A stretch of 64,000 nucleotides of DNA from Octopus sinensis (Eukaryota). The stretch spans positions 6,138,001 through 6,202,000 of the forward strand of contig NC_042999.1 of assembly GCF_006345805.1 (NCBI RefSeq), given 5' to 3'. The translations under genes were made by a program, and so were the position numbers. Below are positions 1,511 to 32,335 of the stretch, piece by piece; within the stretch, counting starts at the first letter, position 1, and every line of letters begins with the position of its first letter. The notes under the pieces were generated by a model that did no database searches, had not been told where the DNA came from, and saw only the letters and a program-made list of their open reading frames with translations.

Positions 1511-1545
1511 ACAGACGAATATTTCGATTCCAGGCAATGACCAGA

Positions 1546-1960
<415 letters not shown>

Positions 1961-3526: not shown

Positions 3527-4078
3527 ACTCTTTTACTCTTTTACTTGTTTCAGTCATTTGACTGCGGCCATGCTGGAGCACCGCCTTTAATCGAGCAAAT
3601 CGACCCCGGGACTTATTCTTTTGTAAGCCCAGTACTTATTCTATCGGTCTCTTTTGCCGAACCGCTAAGTAACAGGGACATAAACACACCAGCATCAGTT
3701 GTCAAGCAATGCTAGGGGGACAAACACAGACACACAAACACACACACGCATATATATATACACATATATACGATGGGCTTCTTTCAGTTTCCGTCTACCA
3801 AATCCACTCACAAGGCATTGGTCGGCCCGGGGCTATAGCAGAAGACACTTGCCCAAGGTGCCACGCAGTGGGACTGAACCCGGAACCATGTGGGTGGCAA
3901 GCAAGCTACTTACCACACAGCCACTCAAAGCCTATACATACATATATATACTTTATTCACTCACAAGGCTTTGGTCGGCCCGAGGCTATAGCAGAAGACA
4001 CTTGCCCAAGGTGCCACGCAGTGGGACTGAACCCGGAACCATGTGGTTGGTAAGCAAGCTACTTACCACACAGCCACA
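3527..4078 (-). mobile_element. Family B SINE with duplicated head (other - copies: 15745-16158, 24875-25003, 41560-41690, 43680-44020, 44030-44420, 52705-53120, 60405-60808)
   Basis: Reverse complement of the same consensus; these copies generate many spurious ORFs in the track. Confidence 0.9.
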
Positions 4079-7940: not shown

Positions 7941-8534
7941 GTGGTTAATGCGTTAAGAGGGGAAGTAGCAGGAATAAAAGCAACCATTCAGGTTGGACTC
8001 CACAATGAGGGGTCTTATCGGAATGCTCTGCTAAAGAACCTCCCTGTACCTGTACCTCTTGTCGCATCTAAGACCGCGGATTCTGCCACCCATGAAGTCA
8101 TTGCCATTGGGGTGCCAGAAGACATGGCTGATCTTCAGGCATTTGCTGCCAACTCAGCCAAAGACCTAGGCTGCGTTCCCCCAACGGGTGCTATCCGCCT
8201 TGGACGACCTGGCCCAAAACCTAGGCTCATCAAACTGTCTTTTTCGGACCACACTGAGGCAACCTCTTACCATCTGGCCTCAGTTAAAGCTGGGCGGGAA
8301 AATCGGACCACCTTCCGAACACGCCCAGGCTTACCGTCCAATGTACGTCCGAAGATACGTGTAGCGGCTTCCCTGAATAGGAACTCAGCTCTACAGGAAA
8401 GCTTCAGTCTTCGGGAAGATGGACAAATCTGGAGATTTGTCAAGACTGATGAAACGTGGAAGAGAGATACCAGCTGGTCTGAGTGCTCTCTACCCACAAT
8501 AACTAAAAAGACTACAGCAACTCAGGGAAACTAA
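7941..8534 (+). pseudogene. CR1 ORF1 (partial nucleic-acid-binding protein)
   Basis: 197 open codons with VIAIGVPE..RLGRPGPKPRLIKLSF, typical of CR1/L2 ORF1 RRM-like region; N-terminus likely missing. Confidence 0.7.
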
Positions 8535-11355
8535 GCCAGGACAACCTGCCATCCTCTACACACCATCATAAACTGCGAGCAGGGTACAAATTGTTGTCCT
8601 TAAATGCTCGCAGTTTATGCAACAAAATACATTTGTTCAACACCTACGTCAGAAGTATTGACCCTGACTTCATCACTGTCACGGAAACATGAGCGCATTC
8701 CTTACTCTGTGATGGGGTTTTCAACATCACGGGGTACAACCTCTTCCGTAAGGACCGCACTAACCGCCGTGGTGGTGGTGTGATGGTCTACGTTCGTTCA
8801 AATTTTTTGGTAATTCCTTGTGCCGATTTGAACGAATCACAAGAAGAAGTTTTTTTCTGTGACGTACATATGACCATGTCAACACTCCTGCTTGGCGTTG
8901 TTTATCGTCCCCCAAATTACCATCAGGATACACAGCTTTGCAACATCCTCCGAGCTGCTGCCAGGAAAACAGCCACTTATGTGTTTATTGCAGACGATTT
9001 CAATCATCCTGAGATCGATTGGTAAACCTTCCATTGGCCACAGAGTGCAAACGATTTTGTTGAGCTTGTGCTGGACTCAAACTGGTCACAAGTAGTCACC
9101 TCTCCAACAAGAGGCGACAACACCTTGGACCTGCTCTTCACCACAACTCCTGAAGCGGTTATCAATTGCACTACGGAGGAACCTCTAGGTGACTCTGATC
9201 ATGCTATGATCATCGCCAATCTGGCTCTTGCGGGCAACAAACACCTGAACCATCTCCAATCTGCTTCCTTCGATTGGAAGAGAGCAGATTGGAACCTGTA
9301 CCACACTGAACTACAGCACCCAAACTGGCGTGAATTCTACAACTCTGGAGATGTGAATACTATACTCCAGAGTATCCTGGACTCAATATGGGCAGCATGT
9401 GCAGCATCAGTGCCACGTAAACAAAAAAAGAAGAACCACCCCAAAAGGGCAATTTGGGAAACTTCAGCGGTCCGACTTGCCAGGAAGGAACGTCGGACTG
9501 CTGAACAGGAATACAAGTTGCATAAATCAGACACCAACAGGAAAAAGCGGAATAAATCCTCCAACCATCTCAAGCAAGTGACAAAAAATGCAGTGCTTGA
9601 ATTTGAACAGTGCATAGCAGCCAATCCTGACAGCAAGGTTTTCTGGAAATATGTGCATTCAAAGCAGAGACCTCACTCTCCAGTGGGCCCTCTTCGCAAC
9701 CCTCACACAAACCAGATCACTGACGACCCCAAGGAATGCGCAGAACTCATTGCCGAGTGCTATGCAAACATATTCACTGTTGAAAGTCAAAATGTACCAT
9801 CTTCACCATCACTAACAGCAAACTCCATAACAACTATGGAATTTACACCTGCAATGCTGCGACGTCACCTTCAAAATAAGCGCAACTATGCCTCCCCTGG
9901 TCTCGATGGAGTTACATACCTGCTTCTCAAACGTGGCAGGCACTTCCTTTTACACCAGCTTTCTATTTTCTTCCAGTACTGTCTCAACAATGGTGCTACT
10001 CCGGAGCAGTGGAAAACTGCCAGTGTCATTCCTCTGTTCAAAAAGGGCGACCGCACATCACCTGTCAACTATCGCCCAGTCAGTCTCACTAGCTGTATTG
10101 CAAAACTGATGGAATCGTGTGTCAGAGAAACACTCTGGAACTTCTGGAGCTCTCACAGTCTCATCCGACCCTCACAATATGGATTTGTCCCTAACTCCAG
10201 CTGCAGTGACCAGCTTGTCGAGTTCCTTGAGGACATTACTCAGATCACTGACAGTGGCTCATGGGTGGATGTTGTCTACCTTGACTTTGCTAAGGCTTTC
10301 AACTCTGTGCCACACAAAAGGCTTATGGTGAAACTCTCTGCAATGGGTGTGGGGGATGACCTTTTTAACTGGTTGAAATCCTTCATCCTCAGCCGAAAGG
10401 AGGTAGTCACAGTTCTAGGACAGCACTCTACACCATATGAGATGTCATCGGGTGTACCACAGGGATCTGTCCTTGGTCCCCTCCTGTTTGTGGCATACAT
10501 TAATGACATAGATGCCAATTTAAAGAATGCCACAGTATTGAAATATGCAGACGACATCAAGCTGTACCTTGAAATTAAGAGGACTGATCCTGATGTCTAC
10601 AACTCTTTCCTGCAATCAGACCTAGACACAATGCAGCAATGGATCACAGACTGGCAACTGAAACTGGCTGTGGACAAGTGTACCACCATGCATTTTGGGA
10701 GAAAAACCCTGCGTCCACATACTCCCTCCACAACACTGATATCAAGAAATCCTCTTGCGAGCGTGACCTAGGCATCACTGTCAGCAGTGATTTGCGTTGG
10801 ACAAAGCATATCTCTAAAATTGTCAAGAAGGCCGAGGGTGTCTTGGCATCACTCAGCAAGACTTTTGTTAGCCGCTCTCCAGCCATCTATTTAAAACTGT
10901 ATACAGCTATGGTACGACCACACTTGGAATTCGCATCATCAGTTTGGAATCCCTATCTTGCTCAGAACATTGACCTCCTGGAATCTGTCCAGAGACGTGC
11001 AACCAAACGCATACCCTCCATCAGACACCTACCATATTCTGAGCGCCTTGTTTCCCTGGGCATGGATTCACTGAAGCTCCGGGGTCTGGCGACGGACTTG
11101 GTAAACACCCACAAGGTTATCAACCACCTCACCAACAACAACACTGAACACCTTTTTGATCTCCATGTGTCTAACACACGTGGACATGCCTACAAAGTCA
11201 GAAAACAACACAGCTCCCATGACTTTCGGAAACATTTTTTCACGCTCAGAGTTGCTGAAGCGTGGAACAAACTGCCTGCGTCAGTTGTTGACTGCCATGA
11301 CACTGCATCCTTTAAGGCCCTCATGCTTTCCGAAATCCGCCGAAACTACACCTGA
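8507..11355 (+). pseudogene. CR1 ORF2 (APE+RT), disrupted
   Basis: One frame from 8507 with stops at 8690 and 9023, then a 1-nt deletion in the A-run 10702-10706 shifting to the 10639..11355 frame. Confidence 0.9.
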
Positions 11356-11726
11356 TTATATATACACTTTAGATGAGTTGTGGTGCACCTGAGCACTGTA
11401 CACAATTATTATTATTATTATTATTTTTTTAAATGTAGCTCATTGTTTGGTTTTAAATAAAATCCTTCACAGCAAATGACTGAAACATTAATATTTCCCT
11501 TTTTATTTTTTCTGTCTCTTGTAGAGCGAGCCGTCTCACAGAATAAATCACCTTATTTGATAAACCAAATACCAAACTTATTCCATGAAGATATTAAGAA
11601 TGGAACAGCTCAGCCGTTATGCGGATCTTCAAGAAGGAAACGGGCATAAATTAGATAAATTTAGGATTCAATATTTCTACCTGTTAATTAAAGTCTAGAT
11701 TAAATAGATGAGTAAATAATAGGGGG

Positions 11727-14005: not shown

Positions 14006-17000
14006 TAAATACTTCAATTATAAGGGTGTAGTTGATTAGTAAATTCTGCCTAAAAAATATGAAACTGGATCAATTTCGACAGTGACTGTATAATAAAGAA
14101 AGGATGAACGTTTAAGTCAAGCTTGATAGAAATGTCTGCAGTCGTGTTCACAATAGACGCAGGAGTGGCTGTGTGGTAAGTAGCTTGCTTACCAACCATA
14201 TGGTTCCAGGTTCAGTCCCACTGTGTGGCACCTTGGGCAAGTGTCTTCTACTATAGCCTCGGGCCGACCAAAGCCTTGTGAGTGGATTTGGTAGACGGAA
14301 ACTGAAAGAAGCCCATCGTATATATGTATATATATATATATTTGTATGTCTGTGTTTGTGTGTCCCCCCCCCCCGACATTACTTGACAACCGATGCTGGT
14401 GTGTTTACGTCCCCGTAGCCTAGCGGTTCGGCAAAAGGGACCGATAGAATAAGTACTAGGCTTACAAAGAATAAGTCCTGGGGTCGATTCGTTTCGGCTA
14501 AAGGTGGTGCTCCAGCATGGCCGCAGTCAAATGACTGAAACAAAACAAAAAAGAAAAGAGCCATTAATAACCATCGCATAGATTGTGAATCATGATCCTC
14601 ATTTAAGGTCCATTTTTTTACATGAGTTGGCACGACCAGGAGCTGTACCAGCTTCTATAACCTATTCTTGGTTTGGTTTCTACAGCTGGATGCCCTTCCA
14701 AACTCAACCACTTTACAGAGCAGTCAGTTGAAGAACCAAAATATCTTATTTCTTCAAATAAGAATTTAACTGGAAAGTTCAATACAGAGTTGTATGAAAC
14801 GACTGACGTATCTGCCTTGGAATTCAACATTATTTGATGTAACGTTAACAACAGAACTGAATCAGGAGTTACAAATTCTTAGAGATGCTGGAAAGAGTTT
14901 TACTAAATCTTAGTGTTACAGTTGTTTAAATTGTTTGAATATTTATTGAATGTCGTCATCATCATCATCATCAGCCGTTCAAGAATTTGGACCTGGAGAT
15001 TTCCATTTCCAGCGACTTCAAGGGCCACCTCCCAGTGGTGTCGGGCGTCAACGAAGAGCCCTCGACTACAACAAGACGACCAAAGATTTTTTTCTTCTTT
15101 TTCCAAGGTCTGGGGTTTCCGGCCCCTAAGCCCTAGACCATCACCTAATCACCCCTACCCATCTTGTTGCTTAACAACAACAACAACAACAGCAGCAGCA
15201 TCTAACATCCATTGCCCACACTGGCATGGGTTGGACAGTTCGGCCAGGGCTACACCAGACTCCAGTCTGATTTGGCATGGTTTCTATGGCTGGATGCCCT
15301 TTCTAACACCAATGACTCCAAGAGTGTAAGGACTGCTTTTACATGCCACTGGCATGGGTACCAGTTGCATAGCACCAGTGTCTGCCACAACTATAATTTC
15401 ATTGGGCTTGATGGCTCTTCTTCTCAAGCTCAACATAATGTCAAAGGTCTTGGTCATTTGTCATTGCCTCTGTGAGGCCCAACACTCAAAAGGTGCTTTT
15501 TACGTGCCACCAGCACAGGTGCTAATTACTTTAGAATAATTACTTAAAGCAGGAAAATTGACACATAAACCAAATAATAGAGAGAAGATGCTGCAAAACA
15601 GATATGATCAATAAGCAAATAGGAGTCTGGCATCAGAGCCTCATCAGATATCAAAGAAAGACCAGATTATTTAAATATAATCTCCAGATGTTTGATACCT
15701 TCAAGATAAGAAAAAATAAATCGGTTTGCCATTTTTTTAATTGTATCTCTTTTACTTGTTTCAGTCATTTGACTGTGGCCATGCTGGAGCACCGCCTTTA
15801 GTCGAACAAATCGACCTCGGGACTTATTCTTTGTAAGCCCAGTACTTATTCTATTGGTTCCTTTTGCCGAACTGCTAAGTTACGGGGACGCAAACACACC
15901 AGCATCGGTTGTCAAGTGATGTTGGGGGTGACAAACACAGACACACAAACATACACACACACACGTACATATATATATATATATATACATATATACGACA
16001 GGCTTCTTGCAGTTTCCGTCTACCAAATCCACTCACAAGGCTTTGGTTGGCCCGAGGCTATAGTAGAAGACACTTGCCCAAGGTGCCACGCAGTGGGACT
16101 GAACCCGGAACCATGAGGTTGGTAAGCAAGCTACTTACCACACAGCCACTCCTACGCCTATCCCATATATATTATTACAAAACACTGTTTAATTAAATAA
16201 CAACACCATTTCTGTTTCGTACTTTAATACTTTTTGAATAACAATTCCAATGATTTTATCCCAAAATTTTCATGAAACACCCAGAGCCCCAAGGGATTTA
16301 AGAACTGTTTGTTGTTATCATACCTGGTGACTGTCATTAAAACTTATGCAGGTGATAAGGGAAAGTAAACAGTAAATTGGGGGCATTCATGCCTTTCTCA
16401 GAGCTTTTCATAATCCTACTGCAACATCTTTTCCCTGCCTAATCTCAAACCCACAATTCAAATAAACCATTGGTTCTTAACTTTTTTTTTCTTGTAGGTG
16501 TAGGACGTGGCTGTGTGGTAAGTAGCTTGCTTACCAACCACATGGTTCCAGGTTCAGTCTCACTGGCTGGCACCTTGGGCAAGTGTCTTCTACTGTAGCC
16601 TCGGGCCGACAAAAGCCTTGTAAGTGGATTTGGTAGACGGAAACTGAAAGAAGCCTGTCGTATATATGTATGTATATGTGTGCGTTTGTTTGTGTGTCTG
16701 TGTTTGTCCCCCCCAACATCGCTTGACAACCGATGCTGGTGTGTTTGCGTCCCTGTAGCTTAGCGGTTCGGCAAAAGTGATCGATAGAATAAATACTAGG
16801 CTTACAAAGAATAAGTCCTGGGGTCAATTTGCTCGACTAAAGGCGGTGCTCCAGCATGGCCACAGTCAAATGACTGAAACAAGTAAAAGAATAAAAAGGG
16901 AGAGTGTTCCTGTTTTGCGTAGTTGTCGTGCCTAGAGTCCACATAAGTGGCAAATGAGTCACCACAACTAAACCAACTTAACATAGATGATCATTTATAA

Positions 17001-18135: not shown

Positions 18136-19084
18136 ATATATATCATCATCATCATTTAGCGTCCGTTTTCCATGCTAGCACAGGTTGGATGGTTCGACCG
18201 GGGTCTGTGAAACCAGGAGGCTGCACCAGGCTCTAGTCTGATCTGGCAGTGTTTCTACAGCTGGATGCCCTTCCTAACGCCATACTCCGCGAATGTAGTG
18301 GGTGCTTTTTATGTGCCACAGGTACACCTGTGCCGGTGATTTTAACTATTTTTTTGTTGTTTTTTTTTATGTATTCATGATAGTCTCATTTTCATAAAAT
18401 GTGTTCAGCAGTCCATGCTATGTAAGTGCCAAATCCCAGCGCTTTAGGGGTTAACAAAACTGAAAAAAAAACTAGATTCCTTACCTCTCTCAAGCTGTCA
18501 AGATATTTCTTCAAACAAGCAGTAACAAATTGAATTATCAATGAAACAATCGTGATGATGATGATGGGGATTACAACAATTAACCAACTGAATTGTAATT
18601 ACAAAATAGTATTAAGTTCAACTAATCACAGAATCTGGAATTACTGAACAGGAGCCCCAGGGATAATCTAAGGGAGATAACTCAGTCTGAATTGTAAAAC
18701 GATGATTTTGTACTTGATTGAAATGCATTGTGGGTAACTTATTTTATCGACCCACCCCACAGCCACACCTTACTTAGGCGACATTTGAACTCAGAAAAGC
18801 AAAAAGCAAACATTTCTGTCTCCTATCGTCTGTCATCTCCATTCCAACCACAAACTGTAAGAATAGCTTCAAAAATTATTTTACATACGTGACTGAGTAG
18901 TGAAGATACTTACCCAAGGGACTGAACCTGAGACCACAGGTCGAGAAGCAAACCTCTTATCCACACAGCCACGCCTGTTGCTGCTTTCACTACAGTTCGA
19001 CTGTTGCATGCTCCAGCCGTCTTCGGGTGTCTTTTGTTGAACTCATTTGTTGTATTGGAATATCTTTATTTGATCAAAGAGGGG

Positions 19085-19380
19085 ACACTGTTCTCATAGC
19101 AGAGTAGATAAGGACATAAGTTAACGCAGTGCTGTCACCCAGACGTTCTGAGTTCAATCCAAGGCAAGATGCTAAGATAATTCACAAAAAAAATCCCCTG
19201 AAGCAAAAATGTCACAAAACGCAAGGCATAGAATGAGAATAGTGGGCCCCAATGGGTCAAATGAAGGGTCGGGTTTGATATTCCAATACAGCAACTGAGT
19301 TCAGCACAAGACACCTGAAGAAGTTGAAATGCAGTGAAAGCAACAATCAAGATAAAGACACCAGTCTGACGGTCATAAAC
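19085..19380 (+). mobile_element. Family G tRNA-headed element with deleted hammerhead; inverted partial copy at 18975-19075
   Basis: TAGCAGAGTAG..GTTCTGAGTTCAATCC head; GACACCTGAAGAAG[deletion]TTGAAATGCAGTGAAAGC. Confidence 0.6.
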
Positions 19381-20300
19381 AGTAGACATAGAGTGCTCAT
19401 GCAGTGGCACGTAAAAGCACCCAGCACACTCTGTGCATTGGTTGGCATTAGGAAGGGCAGCCGGCTGTAGAAACCATGCCAAAACAAACTGAAGTCTGGT
19501 GCAGCGCCACAGCTTACCACCTCTGGTCAAACTGTCCACCCCATGCCAGCATGGACAACAGACGTTAAATGATGATACCCTGTAACACAGGCCCTCAACA
19601 AGGGTTCATGTGCCCCCTGGAGGTTAATTATAAGATTTTGGGGGATCCACACAAGGAAAATAGTAAATTGGGAATTCATCATCATCATCATCGTTTAACG
19701 TCCACTTTCCATGCTGGCATGGGTTGGATGGTTTGACTGAGGACTGGCGAACCAAATGGCTGCACCAAGCTCCAATCTTGATCTGGCAGAGTTTCTACAG
19801 CTGGATGCCCTTCCTAACGCCAACCACTCCGAGAGTGTGGTGGGTGCTTTTACGTGCCACCGGCACGGGGCCAGTCAAGCAGTACTGGCAACGACCTCGC
19901 TCGTTTTTTTTTTTTTTTTTTGCATATGCCAATGGCACAGGTGCCAGTAAGACGAAGCTGGTAACGATCCCGCTCGAATCGTGCTTCCTAATTGCCACCG
20001 GCACAGAAGCCAGTTAGCCACTCTGGCAACGATCATGCTTGGATGGTGCTCTTACCACCCTACTAGCACGGGGCACAAGTGCCAGCACAGTAGTATTTTG
20101 CTTTTGATGTACTTGTTGCAGACAGGTTTTCCTTTTCTAGTATTTAACATCGTTCAAGGTGTTTCTGGCCACTGAAACAAGTTCTCTTGGAGAGGGTCAT
20201 GGCAAGCCTACACAAGTGAATGAGTGAAAAACAAAATTGGACCATGTGGTTGAGAAGAAAACTTCTTCACCACACAGCCATGCCTGAACGCTATTAATTC

Positions 20301-21087: not shown

Positions 21088-21361
21088 CTGAAAAATAAAC
21101 GAAACATTTTTTTCTTAATTATTAAAATACAGTATGGAAAAATATGTAAATATCATCAACGACAACAACAAGTGTATTTTTTCTAAGATAAACACTGCCA
21201 GATCAGACTGGAGCCTGGTGCAGCCTCCTGGCTTCCCAGACCCTGGTTGAACCGTCCAACCCATGCTAGCATGGAAAACGGACGTTAAATGATGATGATG
21301 AGAGAGTTTTTGCTGCACAATCCAATGACTTAACAGGTGAAATGTCTTATTTCATATCATG

Positions 21362-21540
21362 TATGTCGGACTGGTGACCTCACCTTGGTTGTAGCTTTCA
21401 CAATGTTTTGGCTGTGTATGCTCCAGCCTTCTTCAAGGGCCTTGTGATTCATTTTACTGCTTTACCTAAGATTGAGCTTAGAACCTTTAGGTGTCTGCAT
21501 TAACTAGTGCCTTCACCCACTATGCTATGCCTCTAGGCAG
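21362..21540 (-). mobile_element. Family G element with decayed hammerhead, in CHRAC1 intron 2
   Basis: TAGCATAGTGG head, then UUGAAGA-A-GGCUG(GAGCAUACA)CAGCC-AAAA-CA-UU-GUGAA. Confidence 0.6.
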
Positions 21541-22198
21541 TGTCATAGTGGATTCTTAAGGCTTATAAGCCTCCATTCACAGTCTTATGTTAGCACCATA
21601 CTGATTGTGTAATACAATTCTCATCATCATCGTTTAACGTCCGCCTTCCATGCTAGCATGGGTTGGACGAATGACTGAGGGCTGGCGAACCAGATGGCTG
21701 TACCAGGATCCAATCTGATCTGGCAGAGTTTCTACAGCTGGATGCCCTTCCTAACGCCAACCACTCCGAGAGTGTAGTGGGTGCTTTTACGTGCCACTGG
21801 CACGAGGACCAGTCAGGCAGTACTGGCAACAGCCACGCTCAAATGGTGTTTTTTACGTGCCACCTGCACAGGAGCCAGTCCAGCGGCACTGGCAACGACC
21901 TCGCTCGAATGCTTTTTCATGTGCCAGTAAGGCGATGCTGGTAACGATCACGCTCATATGGTGCTCTTACTGCTCCACTAGCATGGATGCCAGTCATCGA
22001 ATTTGATTTCAATTCTATATTTCTAAAATGAGGGACTTTTATATCTCTTTATTGCCCACGGGGGGCAAAACATAGAAGGGACAAACAAAGACAAAGGGAT
22101 TAAGTCGATTACATCGATCCCAGTGTGTAACTGGTACTTATTTAATCGACCCCAAAAGGATGAAAGGCAAAGTTGACCTCAGCAGAATTAGAACACAG

Positions 22199-22692
22199 AA
22201 TCAAAATCGCTGATGTGGCCAATGACAGTACCGCCTGATTGGTTCTCGTGCCAGTGGAACGTTAGAAGCACATCTGAGCGTGATCGCTGCCAGGTTCACA
22301 GATTGGCTCCCATGCCGGTGACACGTGAAAAGCACCATTCGAGCGTGATCGTTGCCAGCGTCGCCTTACTGGCACGTGCAGGTGGTACATGAAAAACAAC
22401 ATTCTAGCGTGGTCGTTGCCAGTGCTGCCAGACTGGCTCCCATGCAGGTAGCACATATAAACACCTTTCGAGCATGGTTGTTGCCAGAACCACCTCACTG
22501 GCCCTTGTCTGGTGGCATGTAAAAGTACCCACTACACTATCAGAGTGGTTGGTATTAGGAAGGGCATCCAGCTGTAGAAACTTTGCCAGATCAGATTGGA
22601 GCCTGGCACAGCCATCTGGTTCGCCAGTCCTCTATCCAACCATCTAACCCATGCCAGCATGGAAATCAGCCGTAAAACGATGATGATGATGA
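22199..22692 (+). mobile_element. Family C element inserted into a family A SINE. Other + copies: 5360-5590, 12140-12360, 19395-19575, 21190-21300, 28395-28658, 38500-38928, 41270-41550, 43515-43675, 49920-50130, 56610-56810, 58860-58990, 60980-61345
   Basis: Same consensus; family A sequence resumes on both sides. Confidence 0.88.
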
Positions 22693-22862
22693 ATGTAATG
22701 GCAGACAAGATACTGCTAAGCATTTCACCTGGCATATTAACGATTCTGCCAGCTTGCCACCTGATGATGGACTTTTATATTATATATTAGTTTGAGTGGT
22801 GTCATCATTTTGGTCATACACAACCGAAATATAGTGAAAAGCAATAACCAAGAATGAGGCCT

Positions 22863-24410
22863 AATAACCAAAGTCCTAATAAGTAGGAAAGTAGACAAGT
22901 CACAAACGCCTTCAGGTAGATGGCCCTGCTCGATCTGTAAAAAAGGTGTAGGTAGAAACTCTATAAGGTGCACCAAGTGCAAGCTATGGACACATAAGAG
23001 GTGTAGCAATGTCAAAGGAAGGCTAACTAGGAAAATAGTTTTTGTATGTGGCAGATGCTCAGGAGCAATAAACACTGAAAATGTGCAGAGAACAACTTCT
23101 GCCACATTCCAGGAGGAAAAACTAGAAGTAGTTGATAGCTTCCGTTACCTAGGTGACCAAATCAGTAGCGGGGGTGGGTGTGCTGAAATGTAACTGCTAG
23201 AGTAAGAATAGCCTGGGCAAAGTTTAGAGAGCTCTTACCCCTGCTGGTGACAAAAGGCCTCTCGCTCAGAGTAAAAGGCAGACTGTATGATGCATGTGTA
23301 CGTATAGCCATGCTACATGGTAGTGAAACATGGGCTGTGACTGCTGAAGATATGTGTAAGCTCACAAGAAATGAAGCCAGTATGCTCCGATGGATGTGTA
23401 ATGTCAGTGTTCATAATCAACAGAGTGTAAGTACCTTGAGAGAAAAGTTGGACCTAAGAAGCATCAGTTGTGGTGTGCAAGAGAGACGTCTGCACTGGTA
23501 TGGGCATGTGACAAGAATGGGTGAAGATAGTTGTGTGCAAAAGTGCCACACTCTAGCAGTTGAGGGAACCTGTGGAAGAGGTAGACCCAGGAAAACCTGG
23601 GACAAGGTGGTGAAGCACGACCTTCGAACTTTAGGTCTCACCAAGGAAATGACTAGAGACCGAGACCTATGGAAGTATGCTGTGCGTGAGAAGACCTGGC
23701 AAGACCAGTGAGAACAGTCAAAATCAAACCAAATCAACATCAGTGGAAATTGCAGCTGTGGTTAAGCGAACCATCCGATCGTTTGTCCGTTGCCAGCCTC
23801 GCCTGGCCCCCGTGCCGGTAGCACGTAAAAGCGCCATCCGTTCGTGTCCGTTGCCAGCCTCGCTTGGCACGTAAAAGCACCATCCGCTCGTGTCCGTTGC
23901 CAGCCTCGCCTGGCCCCCGTGCCGGTAGCACGTAAAAGCACCATCCGTTCGTGTCCGTTGCCAGCCTCGCCTGGCCCCCGCGCCAGTAGCACGTAAAAGC
24001 ACCATCCGTTCGTGTCCGTTGCCAGCCTCGCCTGGCCCCCGTGCCAGTAGCACGTAAAAGCACCATCCGTTCGTGTCCGTTGCCAGCCTCGCCTGGCCCC
24101 CGTGCCAGTAGCACGTAAAAGCACCATCCGTTCGTGTCCGTTGCCAGCCTCGCCTGGCCCCCGTGCTGGTGGCACGTAAAAACACCGTCCGTTCGTGGCC
24201 GTTTGCCAGCTCTGTCTGGCACTGTGCAGGTGGCACGTAAAAAGCACCCACTACACTCACGGAGTGGTTGGCGTTAGGAAGGGCATCCAGCCATAGAAAC
24301 ACTGCCAAATCTGACTGGGCCTGATGAAGCCTTCCGGCTTCACAGACCCCAGTTAAACCGTCCAACCCATGCTAGCATGGAAAACGGACGCTAAATGATG
24401 ATGATGATGA
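22863..24410 (+). mobile_element. 5'-truncated RTE-clade LINE with PHD-like finger, 61-bp minisatellite 3' UTR and (TGA)n tail
   Basis: KTKVL..VDSFRYLGD..LHGSETW..RGRPRKTW; 1-nt deletion near 23188; ATGAGGCCT duplicated at 22854 and 24407. Confidence 0.9.
23771..24230 (+). repeat. 61-bp minisatellite, about 7.5 units
   Basis: Unit starts at 23771, 23834, 23880, 23941, 24002, 24063, 24124, 24185. Confidence 0.95.
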
Positions 24411-24743: not shown

Positions 24744-24874
24744 TCTCGGGCATATGGCTTAGTGTTTAAGAGCACAGGCTACTAACCCCAAAATTCCAAG
24801 TTCGATTCCTGGCAGTGACTTGAATGATAATAATAACAACATCGAAAAATACCTTAGGAATGAGAACCCAGGTT
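24744..24874 (+). mobile_element. Family D SINE 5' part (tRNA-like head); another fragment at 1520-1680
   Basis: TGGCTTAGTGT A-box, AGTTCGATTCC B-box, (AAT)n, CATCGAAAAATACCTTAGGAATGAGAACCCAGGTT. Confidence 0.75.
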
Positions 24875-26334
24875 CAGTTTCCGTCTACCAAATCCACTCA
24901 CAAGGTTTTGGTCAGCCTGAGGCTATAGTAGAAGACACTTGCCCAAGGTGGCACACAGTGGAACTGAACCCGGATCGTGTGGTTGGTAAGCAAGCTACTT
25001 ACAACAGAAAGTTTAACAAATAACGTTTCCGCTTACCACCCAATGTTGAAAGAATGGCTTTAGCTTTTTGGAATGAAATAGATTGGCCTTCTGAATTCTT
25101 TACCACATTATCCATTAAGAACGGTCCCATGTTTCACTTGGTGCAGAAAATCATTCAAGGTTAAACCATCATCATCATTGTTTAACGTCCGCTTTTTGAA
25201 CAAGTTAACTGAGGGCTGGCGAACCAGATGGCTGCACCAGGTTCCAATCTTGATCTGGCAGAGTTTCTACAGCTGGATGCCCTTCCTAACGCCGACCACT
25301 CCGAGAGTGTAGTGGGTGCTTTTTATGTGCCACCAGCATGGGACCAGTCAGGCGGTACTGGCAACTGCCATGCTCAAATGGTGCTTTTTATGTACCACTG
25401 GTACAGGAGCCAGTCCAGTGGAACTGGCAACGACCTCGCTCAAATCAATTGAAGTATTAAAAATCTCCAGGGAAGCAATTTTTTGCGTTAACATTGCATA
25501 ATTTCCGATGTCACTCGCATTAATAGGAAGAAATCACCATTAAAGAAAATCACAGAACAAAAAAAGTCAGTTTGTAATGGGGACACCTGTTTGCTGTGGC
25601 AGGTGATTTCGACACGCAATGGGTTAACCATCTATCTATTCATGTGTGTGTCGGTGTTTGTCTCATATCACCGCTTGACAACCGGTGTTGGTCTATTTAC
25701 GTTCTTGTAACTTGGCCTGTTCAAAAAACGAAACCGATAGAATAACAGGTTTAAATAAAGATAAGTTCTGCAATCGATACATTCGACTAAAAGTTCTTCA
25801 ATGCGGTGCCCCAGCATGACCGGAATTTAATGACTGAAACAAGTAAAAAATAAAAGACAAAGAAAATTAAATCTTACGTTTCTATCATTTTTAGACGACT
25901 TCAATTTCGTGGTATAAAGGGGGTTATCTCCCCTAGACTAGAATTTATTTTTTAATAAAACTCCTAAACTGAACGTAGTTTCTATCATCATCATCATCAT
26001 CATCGTTTAACGTCCGCTTTCCATGCTAGCATGGGTTGGACGGTTCAACTGGGGTCTGGCAAGCCCGAAGGCTACACCAGGCCAGTCAGATCTGGCAGTG
26101 TTTCTACAGCTGGATGCCCTTCCTAACGCCAACCACTCCGAGAGTGTAGTGGGTGATTTTATGTGCCACCGACACAGGTGCCAGACGAGGCTGGCAGACG
26201 GCCACGCTCGGATGGTGATTTTTTATGTGCCACCGACACAGGTGCCAGACGGCCACGCTCGGATGGTGTTTTTTTATGTGCCACCGACACAGGTGCCTAG
26301 AAAAATGAATTCACACCTCCATTAATAGTTATAA

Positions 26335-26475
26335 TTCCGCCTTAGCGAAGGCGGGAGCATTGTTTTCAGTTGTGTTTGTTTGTTTGTTTGTCCGTGGACA
26401 AGATATCTCAAGAACTGCTGGATGGATTTGGCTGAAACTTTCATGACTGACACAAAGTGATTAGATTTTGGGATC
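26335..26475 (+). mobile_element. Helentron-associated (HINE/DINE-1-like) 5' fragment
   Basis: TCCGCC..GGCGGGAG start, (GTTT)n microsatellite, GGATGGATTT..GAAACTTT and GATTAGATTTTGG motifs. Confidence 0.55.
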
Positions 26476-26704
26476 GATCCGGTATGTGGCACAAGTACTT
26501 TCCGTGTGGCACCAGCACAGGTGCTGGTTACATAGCACTGGCACAGGAACTTTCTATGTAACCCCAGTAGCCAAAGGGTCACCAAGTGGTTTGGAAAGAC
26601 ATCTCAGTTGAGAGAGGGAGTATCACATGATTTCCCTCTACTGGACCGTATCAGTAGAAAGCGGTGGTCACCAAAAACGAAAAAGAAATCAAAATGCAAG
26701 TTAC

Positions 26705-26825
26705 CTTGTAAAAACTGTAGAGTTTCTTCTGTATTTACAACTTCAGCTAAATCTCCATATTGGAGCTGTTTCCCGTCACGCCCATTGGTGAGTGACACTC
26801 GGGCTAAATTTTGCACAAAAAACTC
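26705..26825 (-). CDS. CHRAC1: CHRAC1 coding exon 2 (EFFVQNLARVSLTNGRDGKQLQYGDLAEVVNTEETLQFLQ)
   Basis: Acceptor cttttaatag|GAG, donor CAAG|gtaac; 121 nt, phases 0 and 1; continues the histone fold (ELFVQ..LxYxDLA..FQFL in human). Confidence 0.93.
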
Positions 26826-27962
26826 CTATTAAAAGAAAGGACATATTTAATAAACTGAAATACCGTAATTAGATGAAAATAATTCAAAATCCGTTCATAT
26901 TATGTTCTTAAAATGTAAATTAATAAAGATTTTGTTTTTAGTGTATTTGGTAGATGGTAATTAAAAGAAGCCCATCGTATGTGTGTGTGCTTTATGATCT
27001 TGCCTTGACATCATGTATTAGCCAGGGGCATCATCATAATGCAAGCAACATCCTCTGTTTCCAGTCTGCTATAAAAGCATGCCTGGTTATGAGAAACTAT
27101 TACCTACTTGGAAACAGGTAGAGTTGGCAACAGGAGAGGCATTCATTCATGGGAAAATCTAGCTCAACAAATTCCATACAAATATGGCAAATGTTGAGGA
27201 TTCTTACTTATTACAAAGTTTGTGTTAGGAAGGTCAATGATGGGTTTTTTCAGTATTTCACACAAGGTCCTTACCCTGTAGAATTACAGCTATTTTTTTT
27301 TTAATTAAAACGGAGGTGCATGGCTTAGTGGTTAGGGTGTTTGACTCATAAGTAGTTTCAATTCCTGGAGTGGACAATGCATTGTACTCTTGAGCAAAAC
27401 ACTTGACACCAGTCCACTCAGCTGGTAAAAATGAGTCACCCTGCAACAGATCAGCATCCCATTTGTTATCATCATCATCATCACAGAGAAATATACACGC
27501 CAAAGAAATAATTGTAAAATTTAATGCAAATAGATGTTTTTAAAGCATCACTGATAATAGCTGTTAACCTTTAAGACTGGTAGAGATCATCGACCGAGAC
27601 AAACTGGAATCACAAAAACAGGTTTTGTCCTTCAGGCCAAACTAATTCTTTAATTTGGCTTCCATATCAATTCTCTGTTGATTTGTTAAAATCAGCAGGG
27701 GACACACATGTTAGACATGCTTTAGGGAGAATATTAGGAGGATTGACACCAGACATAGAGAAAACAAAATTACCTGAAGAACAAAACCTAACCCTAAATT
27801 TAGTTCTATATTTAAGAGATGAGGAATTATGTACATTATTTACATTTGACAGATATTTGTCCTGCAGTTAAGACAAAATAGCTGGTTAGTATAATTCCAT
27901 AACTACACTGTCGTGATATCATGTTAAATTCAAGACAGCAAATCTGTGGATGCCAATTTCTC

Positions 27963-28054
27963 AATTGAATAAGTAGTTCATTATTTGACGGAGAATTGAA
28001 TAAGTAGTTCGTTATTTGACGGATAATTGAATAAGTAGTTCATTATTTGACGGA
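27963..28054. repeat. 31-bp tandem repeat x3
   Basis: AATTGAATAAGTAGTTC(A/G)TTATTTGACGGA at 27963, 27994, 28025. Confidence 0.95.
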
Positions 28055-28205
28055 TATTTGTCCTCATCTTTGTTGTTAACACAACATTTCGGCTGATATA
28101 CCCTCCAGCCTTCATCAGGTGCCTTGGGGAAATTTCAAACCTGGGTTCTTATTCTTAAGGGATTTTTCAATATTATTATTATTATTCAGGTCACTGTCTG
28201 GAATC
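28045..28205 (-). mobile_element. Family D SINE 3' part containing a hammerhead motif
   Basis: Overlaps the 24744-24874 sequence from GATTCC to AACCCAGGTT, then continues into the ribozyme and tail. Confidence 0.8.
28078..28123 (-). ncRNA. Minimal type-I hammerhead ribozyme motif
   Basis: GGCAC-CUGAUGA-A-GGCUG(GAGGGUAUAU)CAGCC-GAAA-UG-UU^-GUGUU: intact core, 5-bp stem II, 5-bp stem I including two G-U pairs. Confidence 0.8.
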
Positions 28206-29128
28206 AAACAAGATGAGGACAAATATCCGTCAAACATAAATAATGTAAAACCTAAATTGATCAAGAAATGATGAGACGAAATCAGGAGGAAAAAATACAA
28301 TCCTGTCTTAGAGTTATTGGAACACTGATTGTTAGTTGGTGTGTGTGTATGCCTTTTGGCAATCAAAAGAGAAAGGTGTATGCATGTCTGTAACTTGCCA
28401 GCCTCGCCTGGCCCCCATGCCGGTGGCACGTAAAAACACCATCCGTTTGTGGCCATTTGCCAGCTCTGTCTGGCACCTGCAGGTGGCATATAAAAAGCAC
28501 CCACTACACTCACAGAGTGGTTGGCGTTAGGAAGGGCATCCAGCCGTAGAAACACTGCCAAATCTGACTGGGCCTGATGAAGCCTTCCGGCTTCACAGAC
28601 CCCAGTTAAACCGTCCAACCCATGCTAGCATGGAAAACAGACGCTAAATGATGATGATCTAATTTACCAATAATTAAATATTTCAATTTCAAATTAGAAT
28701 TGCTATATTTAAATCAGTAATTCATTGATATCATTATGGAAAGGGACGAGGGCCACAAGTTTCCATTCTGTAAACCAGTGGTTTTCAGTCAGGGTCCACG
28801 TAACTCCTAGTGGTCTCATAAGATTTTGGGGGCTCTACAGAAGCAAAATAAACTGGGGATCCACAATAGTTTTCTTAAGGGTTCATGGAAAAATTTAGAT
28901 GTATTTATTGATTCATTGCAAGAGACAGCAACGTTTCTTTCTCTCGTGTTTTACATAGGCACAGGAGTGGCTGTGTGGTAAGTAGCTTGCTAACCAACCA
29001 CATGGTTCCAGGTTCAGTCCCACTGCGTGGCATCTTGGCCAAGTGTCTTCTGCTATAGCCCCGGGCCGACCAATGCCTTGTGAGTGGATTTGGTAGATGG
29101 AAACTGAAAGAAGCCTGTCATATATATG

Positions 29129-31375: not shown

Positions 31376-32335
31376 CCTTACCTGCACAAGTTTGCACACA
31401 CCATCGACTTTGTTTCCTCATATCTTCCAGAAAAATGGATATTTTTTAATGAATTTTTTTTTACAAATCTGCTTCAGATGGTGTAGATTCCGATTATATG
31501 GGAATTTGTTGTGAAAGGATTTTTCCGAGGGTGATGGGTTTCGGAAAATTCACAGGAGTCGGTTTTTTCTTCACTCGTAACTATCAGAAAAATAAGTAAT
31601 TTATTATCTTTCAGGGTGTGTAGCCTTACCTACACAAGTGCACACACCACCGACTTTGTTTCCTCATATCTTCCAGAAAAATTGGTATTTTTTAATGAAT
31701 TTTTTACAGGAGTGGCTGTGTGGTAAGTAGCTTGCTTACCAACCACATGGTTCCGGGTTCAGTCCCACTGCGTGGCACCTTGGGCAAGTGTCTTCTGCTA
31801 TAGCCTCGGGCCGACCAATGCCTTGTGAGTGGATTTGGTAGACGGAAACTGAAAAAAGCCCGTTGTATATATGTATAATTGTGTGTGTGTATATGTTTGT
31901 GTGTCTGTTTGCTCCCCCAACATTGCTTGACAACCGATGCTGGTGTGTTTACGTCCCCGTCACTTAGCGGTTCGGCAAAAGAACCGATACAATAAGTACT
32001 AGGCTTACAAAGAACAAGTCCTGTGGTCGATTTGATCGACTAAATGTGGTGCTCCAGCATGGCCGCAGTCAAATGACTGAAACAAGTAAAAGAGTAAGAA
32101 GTAAATAGTAAATCCGCTTCAGTTGGTGTAGATTCCGATTATATGGGAATTTGTTGTGAAAAGATTTTTCCGAGGGTGATGGGTTTCGGAAAATTCACAG
32201 GAGTCGGTTTTTTCTTCACTCGTAACTTATCAGAAAAATGGGTAATCTATTATCTTTCAGAGTGAGTAGATTACGATTATATCGAAATTTGATGTGAAAA
32301 GGAAAATGGGGAACATACAGACACACATCACGTTT
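31376..32335. repeat. Tandem duplication of a ~250-bp non-autonomous DNA-element unit; second unit split by a family B SINE; inverted relative at ~32625-32880
   Basis: CACACC..GACTTTGTTTCCTCATATCTTCCAGAAAA and GGTGTAGATTCCGATTATATGGGAATTTG each occur twice. Confidence 0.75.

Follow-up and report, generated by a model that had tools for sequence, protein, structure and literature searches.

Does a tRNA-headed repeat in the octopus genome carry a hammerhead ribozyme as a part of its own structure, or do the two simply lie side by side? The question is raised by a 64-kb stretch of forward-strand DNA from Octopus sinensis (contig NC_042999.1, positions 6,138,001 to 6,202,000), here called the window, in which fragments of a short repeat, family D, were predicted to assemble into a tRNA-derived short interspersed nuclear element (SINE) with a hammerhead near its 3′ end. 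Both strands of this one window were analyzed, and the counts given below refer to it alone. Coordinates are numbered from the first nucleotide of the window. The sequence is AT-rich (39.5% G+C) and dense in short repeats, among which are three family-D fragments (copies 1, 2, and 3) and four relatives (B, C, D, and E). The hammerhead modules are lettered A to E, wherein module A (copy A) is the hammerhead of family-D copy 2. Relative D (19225-19389) is distinct from family D.

We favor a model, to which we assign a probability of about 0.55, wherein these sequences are a group of decayed non-autonomous retroelements composed of a tRNA-derived head, a minimal hammerhead of the type known from Penelope-like elements, and a tail of ~40-70 nt, which spread via a Penelope-like partner. 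The original prediction spoke of a self-cleaving SINE system. We infer from sequence features that this term may be apt, and use it as a proposal rather than as a finding.

The hammerhead motif of copy A

The motif at 28078-28123 on the minus strand is, at the sequence level, a minimal type-I hammerhead of the Penelope type: GGCAC CUGAUGA A GGCUGG-AGGGUAUA-UCAGCC GAAA UG U U|GUGUU. Every core position is present between 28118 and 28083, including C3, U4, G5, A6, N7, G8, and A9, followed by G12, A13, and A14, the A15.1/U16.1 pair, and H17. Helix I (GGCAC/GUGUU) is formed by three Watson-Crick and two G.U pairs and has only three base pairs in the family consensus. Helix II (GGCUGG/UCAGCC) comprises six base pairs, one of them G.U, and is closed by a G10.1-C11.1 pair. 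Helix III is absent, with just two bases (UG, positions 15.2 and 16.2) separating A15.1 from U16.1, and H17 is U17. The predicted cleavage site follows U17, between 28083 and 28082. The minimal hammerhead proposed earlier is real as far as sequence goes.

The sequence past the predicted cleavage site, GUGUUAACAACAAAGAUGAGGACAAAUAUCCGUCAAA (28046-28082, minus strand), forms a tail, and relatives B, D, and E have tails homologous to it. A descriptor calling for CUGAUGA, zero or one bulged base, a helix II of at least 4 bp, GAAA, 0-8 nt, U16.1, a non-G nucleotide at H17, and a helix I of at least 3 bp matches the two strands of the window once, at 28118 on the minus strand. The chance expectation from 300 Markov-shuffled windows is 0.017 matches per window, or 0.010 when helix II is at least 5 bp. 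When folded alone, the 46-nt motif forms helices I and II, with the hammerhead structure at -11.5 kcal/mol versus -12.4 kcal/mol for the minimum free energy (MFE) structure. For the family consensus motif, the hammerhead structure is the MFE structure itself.

Anatomy of the family-D copies

Copy 1 (24744-24874, plus strand) consists of a tRNA-like head, an AAT-type microsatellite (24823-24840), and the 34-nt body ATCGAAAAATACCTTAGGAATGAGAACCCAGGTT (24841-24874), where its 3′ end has been cut by a rearrangement. The head carries an A box, TGGCTTAGTGT (24755-24765), that matches TRGCNNAGTGG at 10 of 11 positions and a B box, AGTTCGATTCC (24799-24809), that matches GGTTCGANNCC equally well (10/11). 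The two box starts lie 44 nt apart, which is a tRNA-like spacing as judged by sequence match only. With default settings, ARAGORN reports no tRNA for this head in a window-wide search, and calls it only when the threshold is relaxed to 70%.

Copy 2 (28138-28209, minus strand) is 5′-truncated within the B box, and its full run, including the hammerhead and tail, extends from 28209 to 28046. It begins with the B-box remainder GTTTGATTCCAGACAGTGAC (28209-28190), followed by (AAT)5 (28186-28172) and the same body as in copy 1 (28171-28138). A linker of ~14 nt separates this body from the hammerhead. Copies 1 and 2 align over 75 nt with 82.7% identity (BLAST, E 1.65e-16). Copy 3 (1519-1678, plus strand) is likewise 5′-truncated in the B box, carries a long (GAT/AAT)n tract, and is 3′-truncated after CCTTAGGAAA. 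The anatomy that had been described for this family, with its A and B boxes, (AAT)n, body, hammerhead, and tail, is present across copies 1 and 2 at the coordinates given for it, accurate to the base.

Relatives that carry the hammerhead module

A profile of the hammerhead region used with nhmmer recovers five module copies in the window, with E values from 5e-25 to 4e-5 (5e-33 to 7e-22 with a second profile). Module A (28132-28046, minus strand) has an intact hammerhead. Module B (21451-21362, minus strand) reads UUGAAGA, and AAAA replaces GAAA (C3U and G12A). Module C (19041-18976, minus strand) has CCGAAGA and GAAC (U4C and A15.1C). Helix II has been deleted from module D (19300-19370, plus strand), in which U16.1 is changed to C. 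Both boxes are intact in module E (about 22757-22865, plus strand), which has an insert of ~40 nt in helix II. Pairwise identity among the modules is 65-81%, indicating that the copies are old.

Two of these modules lie within relatives whose remaining parts can be described briefly as follows. Relative C (18976-19100, minus strand) retains a head remnant, a linker, and a decayed hammerhead (19029-18988), and is cut at 18975 by another SINE. Relative E (22688-22899, plus strand) starts right after the (GAT)n of an abundant repeat and preserves CUGAUGA and GAAA (22757-22836), with UA at positions 15.2 and 16.2.

Several details recur among the modules. The unpaired base between A9 and G10.1 is A in copies A and B, C in copy C, and U in copy E, and the G10.1-C11.1 pair is retained in all four. 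Along with a short helix I, these are emerging traits of the hammerheads of Penelope elements (Cervera & De la Pena 2014, PMC4209133). Position 7 is U or A across the copies, a variation that hammerheads tolerate. The two bases at 15.2 and 16.2 that follow GAAA are UG in A, CA in B, UG in C, UG in D, and UA in E, of which only the last is truly palindromic. Because this set is the spectrum expected from CpG decay, the ancestral bases were probably CG, which would give GAAA-CG-U and the palindrome ACGU, a tetrad that is typical of minimal hammerheads able to form dimers.

Linkage of the head and the hammerhead

Relative B (21302-21533, minus strand) provides the clearest view of the complete unit, since its head, decayed hammerhead, and tail are contiguous. 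Its A box, TAGCATAGTGG (21527-21517), is a perfect match (11/11), and its B box, GGTTCTAAGCT (21485-21475), starts 42 nt downstream of the A-box start. With its threshold relaxed to 80%, ARAGORN recognizes a degenerate tRNA-Cys(GCA)-like cloverleaf in this head (21530-21458). A 35-nt linker follows, then the decayed hammerhead (21439-21399, with UUGAAGA and AAAA) and a tail of ~95 nt that ends at 21302 against (ATC)n. From A box to B box, the relative B head resembles the family-D head with a z score of 4.7-5.5, and at most 1 in 1000 shuffles aligns as well. A local alignment of the two gives z 4.2. Because relative B is contiguous, the head is linked to the hammerhead in this lineage, and to this extent the original claim that the two make up one element holds.

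Relatives C and D have in common a head-like stretch, a linker, and a hammerhead (z 18.6). In relative D (19225-19389, plus strand) the head-like stretch, GGCATAGAATGAGAATAGTGGG ... GGGTTTGATATTCC, is followed by the linker, the hammerhead (19312-19336) from which helix II is missing, and the tail. The spacer between these two relatives contains, at 19140-19180 on the plus strand, a fragment, CTGAGTTCAATCCAAGGCAAGATGCTAAGA, that resembles the linker and box region of C and D and is followed by a run of eight A nucleotides.

Within family D, copies 1 and 2 are homologous as far as AACCCAGGTT and no further. The break in copy 1, at AACCCAGG|TT, falls exactly where its overlap with copy 2 ends, and joins it to a fragment of another SINE (24873-25006). 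Compared with ten other copies of that abundant SINE, the fragment is without the normal 5′ and 3′ ends. Truncation at both ends indicates that the junction is a rearrangement rather than an insertion. Copy 1 is therefore uninformative about what once followed its body, and does not contradict copy 2. We considered whether copy 1 continues beyond a nested SINE flanked by a target duplication, and rejected this arrangement since what looks like the duplicate, GTTTCCG..ACC, is part of the other SINE itself. The DNA beyond the SINE fragment is unlike the module: z does not exceed 1.4 in comparisons with the tails of A, B, and D, and is 2.7 with the module consensus, a value that we read as not significant.

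Family D looks like the architecture of relative B into whose linker an (AAT)n tract and a short body have been inserted. We regard it as a younger branch, which carries (AAT)n and a body of ~35 nt between the head and the hammerhead, and the linkage of these two parts within family D itself would follow this arrangement.

Insertion anatomy and a possible partner element

The locus of copy A consists of two 5′-truncated copies arranged head to head, each with its own 3′ end. A second copy of the tail, AACAAGATGAGGACAAATATCCGTCAAACATAAATAATGTA, which is inverted and 5′-truncated (28207-28247, plus strand), adjoins the truncated 5′ end of copy 2 at 28209. The direct tail is split into two parts (28046-28082 and 27832-27862) by a 31-bp tandem repeat and ~100 bp of unassigned DNA. 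This tandem repeat (27963-28060, minus strand; 3.2 copies, 94%) has the tail motif TCCGTCAAA of copy A as its seed, and the distal part of the direct tail, GGACAAATATCTGTCAAATGTAAATAATGTA (27832-27862, minus strand), corresponds to the outermost stretch of the inverted arm, with 91% identity over 32 nt. The inverted arms of the locus accordingly pair 28046-28075 with 28205-28234 (30 nt, 93%) and 27832-27863 with 28216-28247 (32 nt, 91%). Twin priming of the L1 type was rejected as a source of this arrangement, since the inverted piece would then come from further 5′ in the element.

Relatives C and D form a second inverted pair that is also arranged head to head (45 nt at 89%, among other matches), with hammerhead boxes ~290 bp apart on opposite strands. 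Head-to-head inverted and 5′-truncated pairs are therefore found at two of the four loci that carry the hammerhead module. Penelope-like elements are known to carry "dual min-HHRs" that are located ~100-700 bp apart in opposite strands (PMC4209133), and their insertions can include an inverted 5′-truncated copy (PMC8557442). An inverted partner was also sought for relative B, with a result that is not significant (P 0.06).

Relative B at both ends and relative E at its 5′ end adjoin the (GAT)n end of an abundant repeat. This placement recalls the preference of Penelope-like elements for microsatellites, although the repeat is so common that chance may explain it. Relative B is moreover bracketed by inverted arms of this repeat, 21253-21303 and 21619-21669 (51 nt, 94% complementary), whose (GAT)n ends point inward. 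These arms could reflect a target preference, a palindromic duplication, or chance.

Proposed mechanism and competing explanations

In the mechanism we propose, RNA polymerase III (Pol III) would transcribe the unit from its tRNA-like head, which is presumed to act as an internal promoter. The 3′ module would have been captured from the terminal repeat of a Penelope-like element, such that the reverse transcriptase (RT) and endonuclease (EN) of the partner could recognize the hammerhead and tail and make a genomic copy of the RNA. Both strands of the cut would serve for priming, which would yield head-to-head, 5′-truncated pairs. A hammerhead that has no helix III would be expected to cleave only when two RNAs, or the units of a tandem transcript, pair via the ACGU-type palindrome after GAAA, with cleavage predicted to fall after U17 (28083|28082). 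We more tentatively consider a broader scenario, which we would place below even odds, in which cephalopods carry a Penelope-dependent SINE superfamily whose Pol III head captured a minimal hammerhead and tail as its means of being reverse-transcribed, and in which the hammerhead processes RNA in trans when two transcripts pair. Such a superfamily would represent a SINE/partner system outside the LINE (long interspersed nuclear element) world, and would offer a natural context for studying the function of minimal hammerheads.

A number of results weigh against our preferred model. Four of the five hammerheads (B, C, D, and E) are dead, with at least one disabling change each, and only that of copy A is intact. 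Agreement with the consensus across these five copies is 58/64 (91%) in the core and 207/251 (82%) elsewhere, which is not a significant difference (Fisher one-sided P 0.076). Helix II exhibits no covariation or compensatory change among the five, its sole change being a one-sided replacement of G-C by G.U in copy C. In its 76-nt context, copy A folds no more stably than shuffled sequences (z -0.69), and helix I has a competitor there in the hairpin UGUUGU/ACAACA, which is peculiar to copy A. The tetrad of copy A, AUGU, could dimerize only via two G.U pairs, and so even this copy may be poorly active. The Rfam models Hammerhead_1, _II, _3, HH9, and HH10 give no match at the gathering score, and none appears when the cutoff is relaxed to E<=10 over 4 kb or when the search is confined to a slice of 201 nt. 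Rfam likewise finds no tRNA in the window sequence at the gathering score or at E<=10. As a control, canonical hammerheads from metagenomes were submitted to Rfam and were missed too, the best result being a mis-registered Hammerhead_II at 16.4 bits versus a gathering score of 37, and so the silence of Rfam on copy A is weak evidence.

The remaining points of this kind concern linkage and mobilization. No single family-D copy holds both head and hammerhead, and here the claim that they form one element goes beyond what family D itself displays. The heads of relatives D and E have no significant similarity to those of family D or relative B. Mobilization by a Penelope element, as originally proposed, is in keeping with the Penelope-style inverted pairs at two loci, and yet neither a Penelope RT nor a GIY-YIG open reading frame (ORF) is present among the 23 window ORFs of at least 120 amino acids that were examined. 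A possible target-site duplication, AATTTAGG..TTTT, that flanks the copy A locus is only suggestive (P 0.03 for an exact 8-nt match, and P 0.06-0.12 by gapped alignment).

A different fold for copy A was also considered, in which the UGUUGU/ACAACA hairpin serves as helix III of a monomeric hammerhead. In that fold A15.1 would stand opposite A instead of U, and the relatives do not have the hairpin, for which reasons we rejected it.

These results leave room for three other explanations. Family D might be an ordinary SINE, and copy 2 a one-off junction, made by template switching or adjacent insertion, with a solo fragment of a Penelope terminal repeat. Copies 1 and 2 share just 75 nt, with homology that ends at AACCCAGGTT, the ~10 nt TGAAATTTCC between the body and the clear module homology are unassigned, and copy 3 is also without a hammerhead. 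Moreover, animals commonly have solo minimal hammerheads that stem from truncated Penelope-like elements (PMC4209133). We nevertheless consider a chimera unlikely. The end of copy 1 is a rearrangement with a doubly truncated SINE fragment and does not inform the matter, whereas relative B has a homologous head contiguous with the same module, and C, D, and E carry upstream head-like or B-box-like sequence at similar distances. In addition, the inverted tail arm directly adjoins the 5′ end of the family-D copy, as if the whole unit had been reverse-transcribed in one event.

It is harder still to view the module as a conserved SINE body or tail whose hammerhead match is coincidental or a long-dead relic, an explanation to which we give a rather low probability. 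The single intact core, its conservation not significantly above that of the flanks, the missing covariation, the negative Rfam result, and a helix I of three Watson-Crick pairs are all in its favor, as is the low in vitro activity reported for Penelope minimal hammerheads even as dimers (PMC4209133). This explanation must contend with a chance expectation of ~0.01 per window, with the recurrence in the relatives of the bulged base and of G10.1-C11.1, neither of which was used to pick the family, and with the CpG-decay pattern at 15.2/16.2 that points to an ancestral ACGU. Furthermore, the same pattern of box, helix II, and GAAA pulls canonical hammerheads from metagenomes (12 of 16 loci, below). 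It is highly improbable that the module derives instead from a C/D-box small nucleolar RNA (snoRNA), with a UGAUGA C box and a CUGA D box, or from a decayed coding fragment (K-x-P-E/D-E/D-G-W). UGAUGA does occur inside CUGAUGA, and relative D has CUGA ~60 nt downstream, but CUGA is missing in A and B, and across the module no snoRNA family in Rfam scores meaningfully, even at a weak level. In A, B, and C one reading frame stays open through the module and encodes similar peptides, but these match no Pfam family, and neither origin accounts for a G-C-closed helix II directly before GAAA.

Comparison with known hammerhead elements

The octopus motif most resembles the minimal hammerheads that Penelope-like elements carry (PMC4209133; Lunse, Weinberg & Breaker 2016/17). 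The two are alike in their type-I topology, the absence of helix III, the extra base after A9, the G10.1-C11.1 pair, and the short helix I. The octopus ancestor would probably also have had the short palindrome at 15.2/16.2. Both types show a high sequence variability, and both occur as dispersed single motifs and as opposite-strand pairs a few hundred bp apart. Helix II has 5-6 bp in octopus, compared with 7-8 bp in Schistosoma and 6 bp in Drosophila. However, the minimal hammerheads of Penelope-like elements sit in the terminal repeat of an element that codes for RT/EN, whereas the octopus motif follows a tRNA-like head. The octopus family differs further in that its consensus helix I has only three Watson-Crick pairs, and the window contains no Penelope-like element.

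The Schistosoma repeats Sm-alpha and Sj-alpha (Ferbeyre et al. 1998; Laha et al. 2000, as summarized in PMC6765202) likewise combine Pol III boxes and a hammerhead in one short non-autonomous unit. As that source describes it, Sm-alpha has a canonical hammerhead with loop-loop contacts, its cleavage has been shown, and it often forms tandem arrays (PMC6765202). The octopus element is a minimal variant that is dispersed or inverted and resides in a mollusc host, and its likeness to Sm-alpha is one of description, not of sequence.

Animal non-LTR (long terminal repeat) retrozymes (Cervera & De la Pena 2020, PMC7229834; Li et al. 2026, preprint 10.64898/2026.07.22.740005) are also non-autonomous, bear hammerheads, have been proposed to depend on Penelope, and are known in mussel. 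They differ in being tandem repeats of 170-400 bp, with circular RNAs and without a tRNA head. Tandem Repeats Finder detects no tandem array of 170-400 bp hammerhead units in the window, and only the 31-bp repeat (3.2 copies) in the tail of copy A, and so the octopus element is not a retrozyme in the defined sense. Set beside the retrozymes, it would be a Pol III-driven cousin.

Octopus also has the tRNA-derived SINEs OK, OR1, and OR2 (Ohshima & Okada 1994, via PMC4824008), which are alike in their tRNA head with A and B boxes and in their dispersed short copies. These have CORE or LINE-type 3′ parts and are not known to contain a ribozyme. Here too the likeness is one of description rather than sequence. 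No paper on a hammerhead-bearing SINE in octopus or other cephalopods was found, in a search that most subscription journals and Repbase lie outside, and so an earlier description is possible. In the giant-squid genome paper, 235 loci of Rfam Hammerhead_1 are listed but not analyzed any further. We therefore view octopus as a new host with a new variant of known parts, namely the Sm-alpha-type SINE and the Penelope-type minimal hammerhead.

If our model is correct, the octopus elements tie the hammerhead SINEs of schistosomes to the minimal hammerheads of Penelope-like elements and add a mollusc and cephalopod case. A system as compact as ~250 nt would be convenient for asking whether minimal hammerheads cleave in vivo and whether the motif itself is recognized by Penelope RT. 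For genome annotation, it would point to a class of repeats overlooked by standard scans for tRNAs and by Rfam scans alike.

Searches of metagenomic and viral sequences

Metagenomes were scanned with the pattern CTGAWGANGGCTGGAG-N(4-12)-AGYCGAAA, which returned 16 loci. Twelve of these conform to the textbook hammerhead, in that both stem I and stem III are long, and reside on contigs that look bacterial or phage-derived, and none of the 16 is related to the octopus element. On contigs L004-L012 and L016-L018, helix II and its loop, GGCTGGAGGGATACCAGCC, differ very little from their counterparts in copy A, GGCTGGAGGGTATATCAGCC. This likeness is probably a coincidence, because the octopus family consensus has a different loop, AGCATACA. 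Four AT-rich, eukaryote-like contigs from metagenomes of the Joint Genome Institute (JGI), L003, L013, L014, and L015, carry CUGAUGA-U-GGCUGGAG...AGCCGAAA without a long helix III, and these may represent minimal hammerheads of host animals whose DNA was in the samples. In exact-pattern scans, metagenomes yielded no match to the family-D body, and viral contigs none to the hammerhead. A protein query taken from a spurious ORF that covers the head to the hammerhead gave no match either.

Other repeats in the window

The sole autonomous element is a LINE (7941-11430, plus strand) that codes for an APE (apurinic/apyrimidinic-type) endonuclease and an RT and ends in (ATT)6 at 11407-11425. Its ORF at 9068-10771 matches RVT_1 (E 4e-36) and, weakly, Exo_endo_phos_2. 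The closest database protein is 80% identical and is encoded on a 2.7-kb metagenome contig of the European Nucleotide Archive (ENA) (L001; 77% nucleotide identity over 2.6 kb). A long contig that was reached via a 55% relative of this LINE has no repeats in common with the window. The 3′ end of the LINE is not similar to the tail of the hammerhead module, and the module accordingly has no tail in common with a partner LINE in the window.

The abundant SINE whose fragment adjoins copy 1 is tRNA-headed and has at least 13 copies with 87-92% identity (for example, 24873-25006, 1123-1257, 3783-3917, 14172-14306, and 31719-31853). Its 5′ end reads GGCGCAGGAGTGGCTGTGTGGTAAG... and its 3′ end ...GGAAACTGAAAGAAGCCCGTCGTATATAT(TA/CA)n, and its heads are tRNA-Thr-like by relaxed ARAGORN.

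A large share of the window is taken up by a repeat of ~290 bp that ends in ...CATGCTAGCATGGAAAACGGACGTTAAACGATGATGATGA and is found at 25167-25446, 25984-26297, 21621-21910, 28395-28658, and more than 30 other places. It contains internal tandem sub-repeats of 61-66 bp (6.2 copies with 93% identity at 23867-24248). Its copies usually share 75-86% identity, but the pair at 24141-24405 and 28395-28658 reaches 95.5%, a hint that this DNA was duplicated locally.

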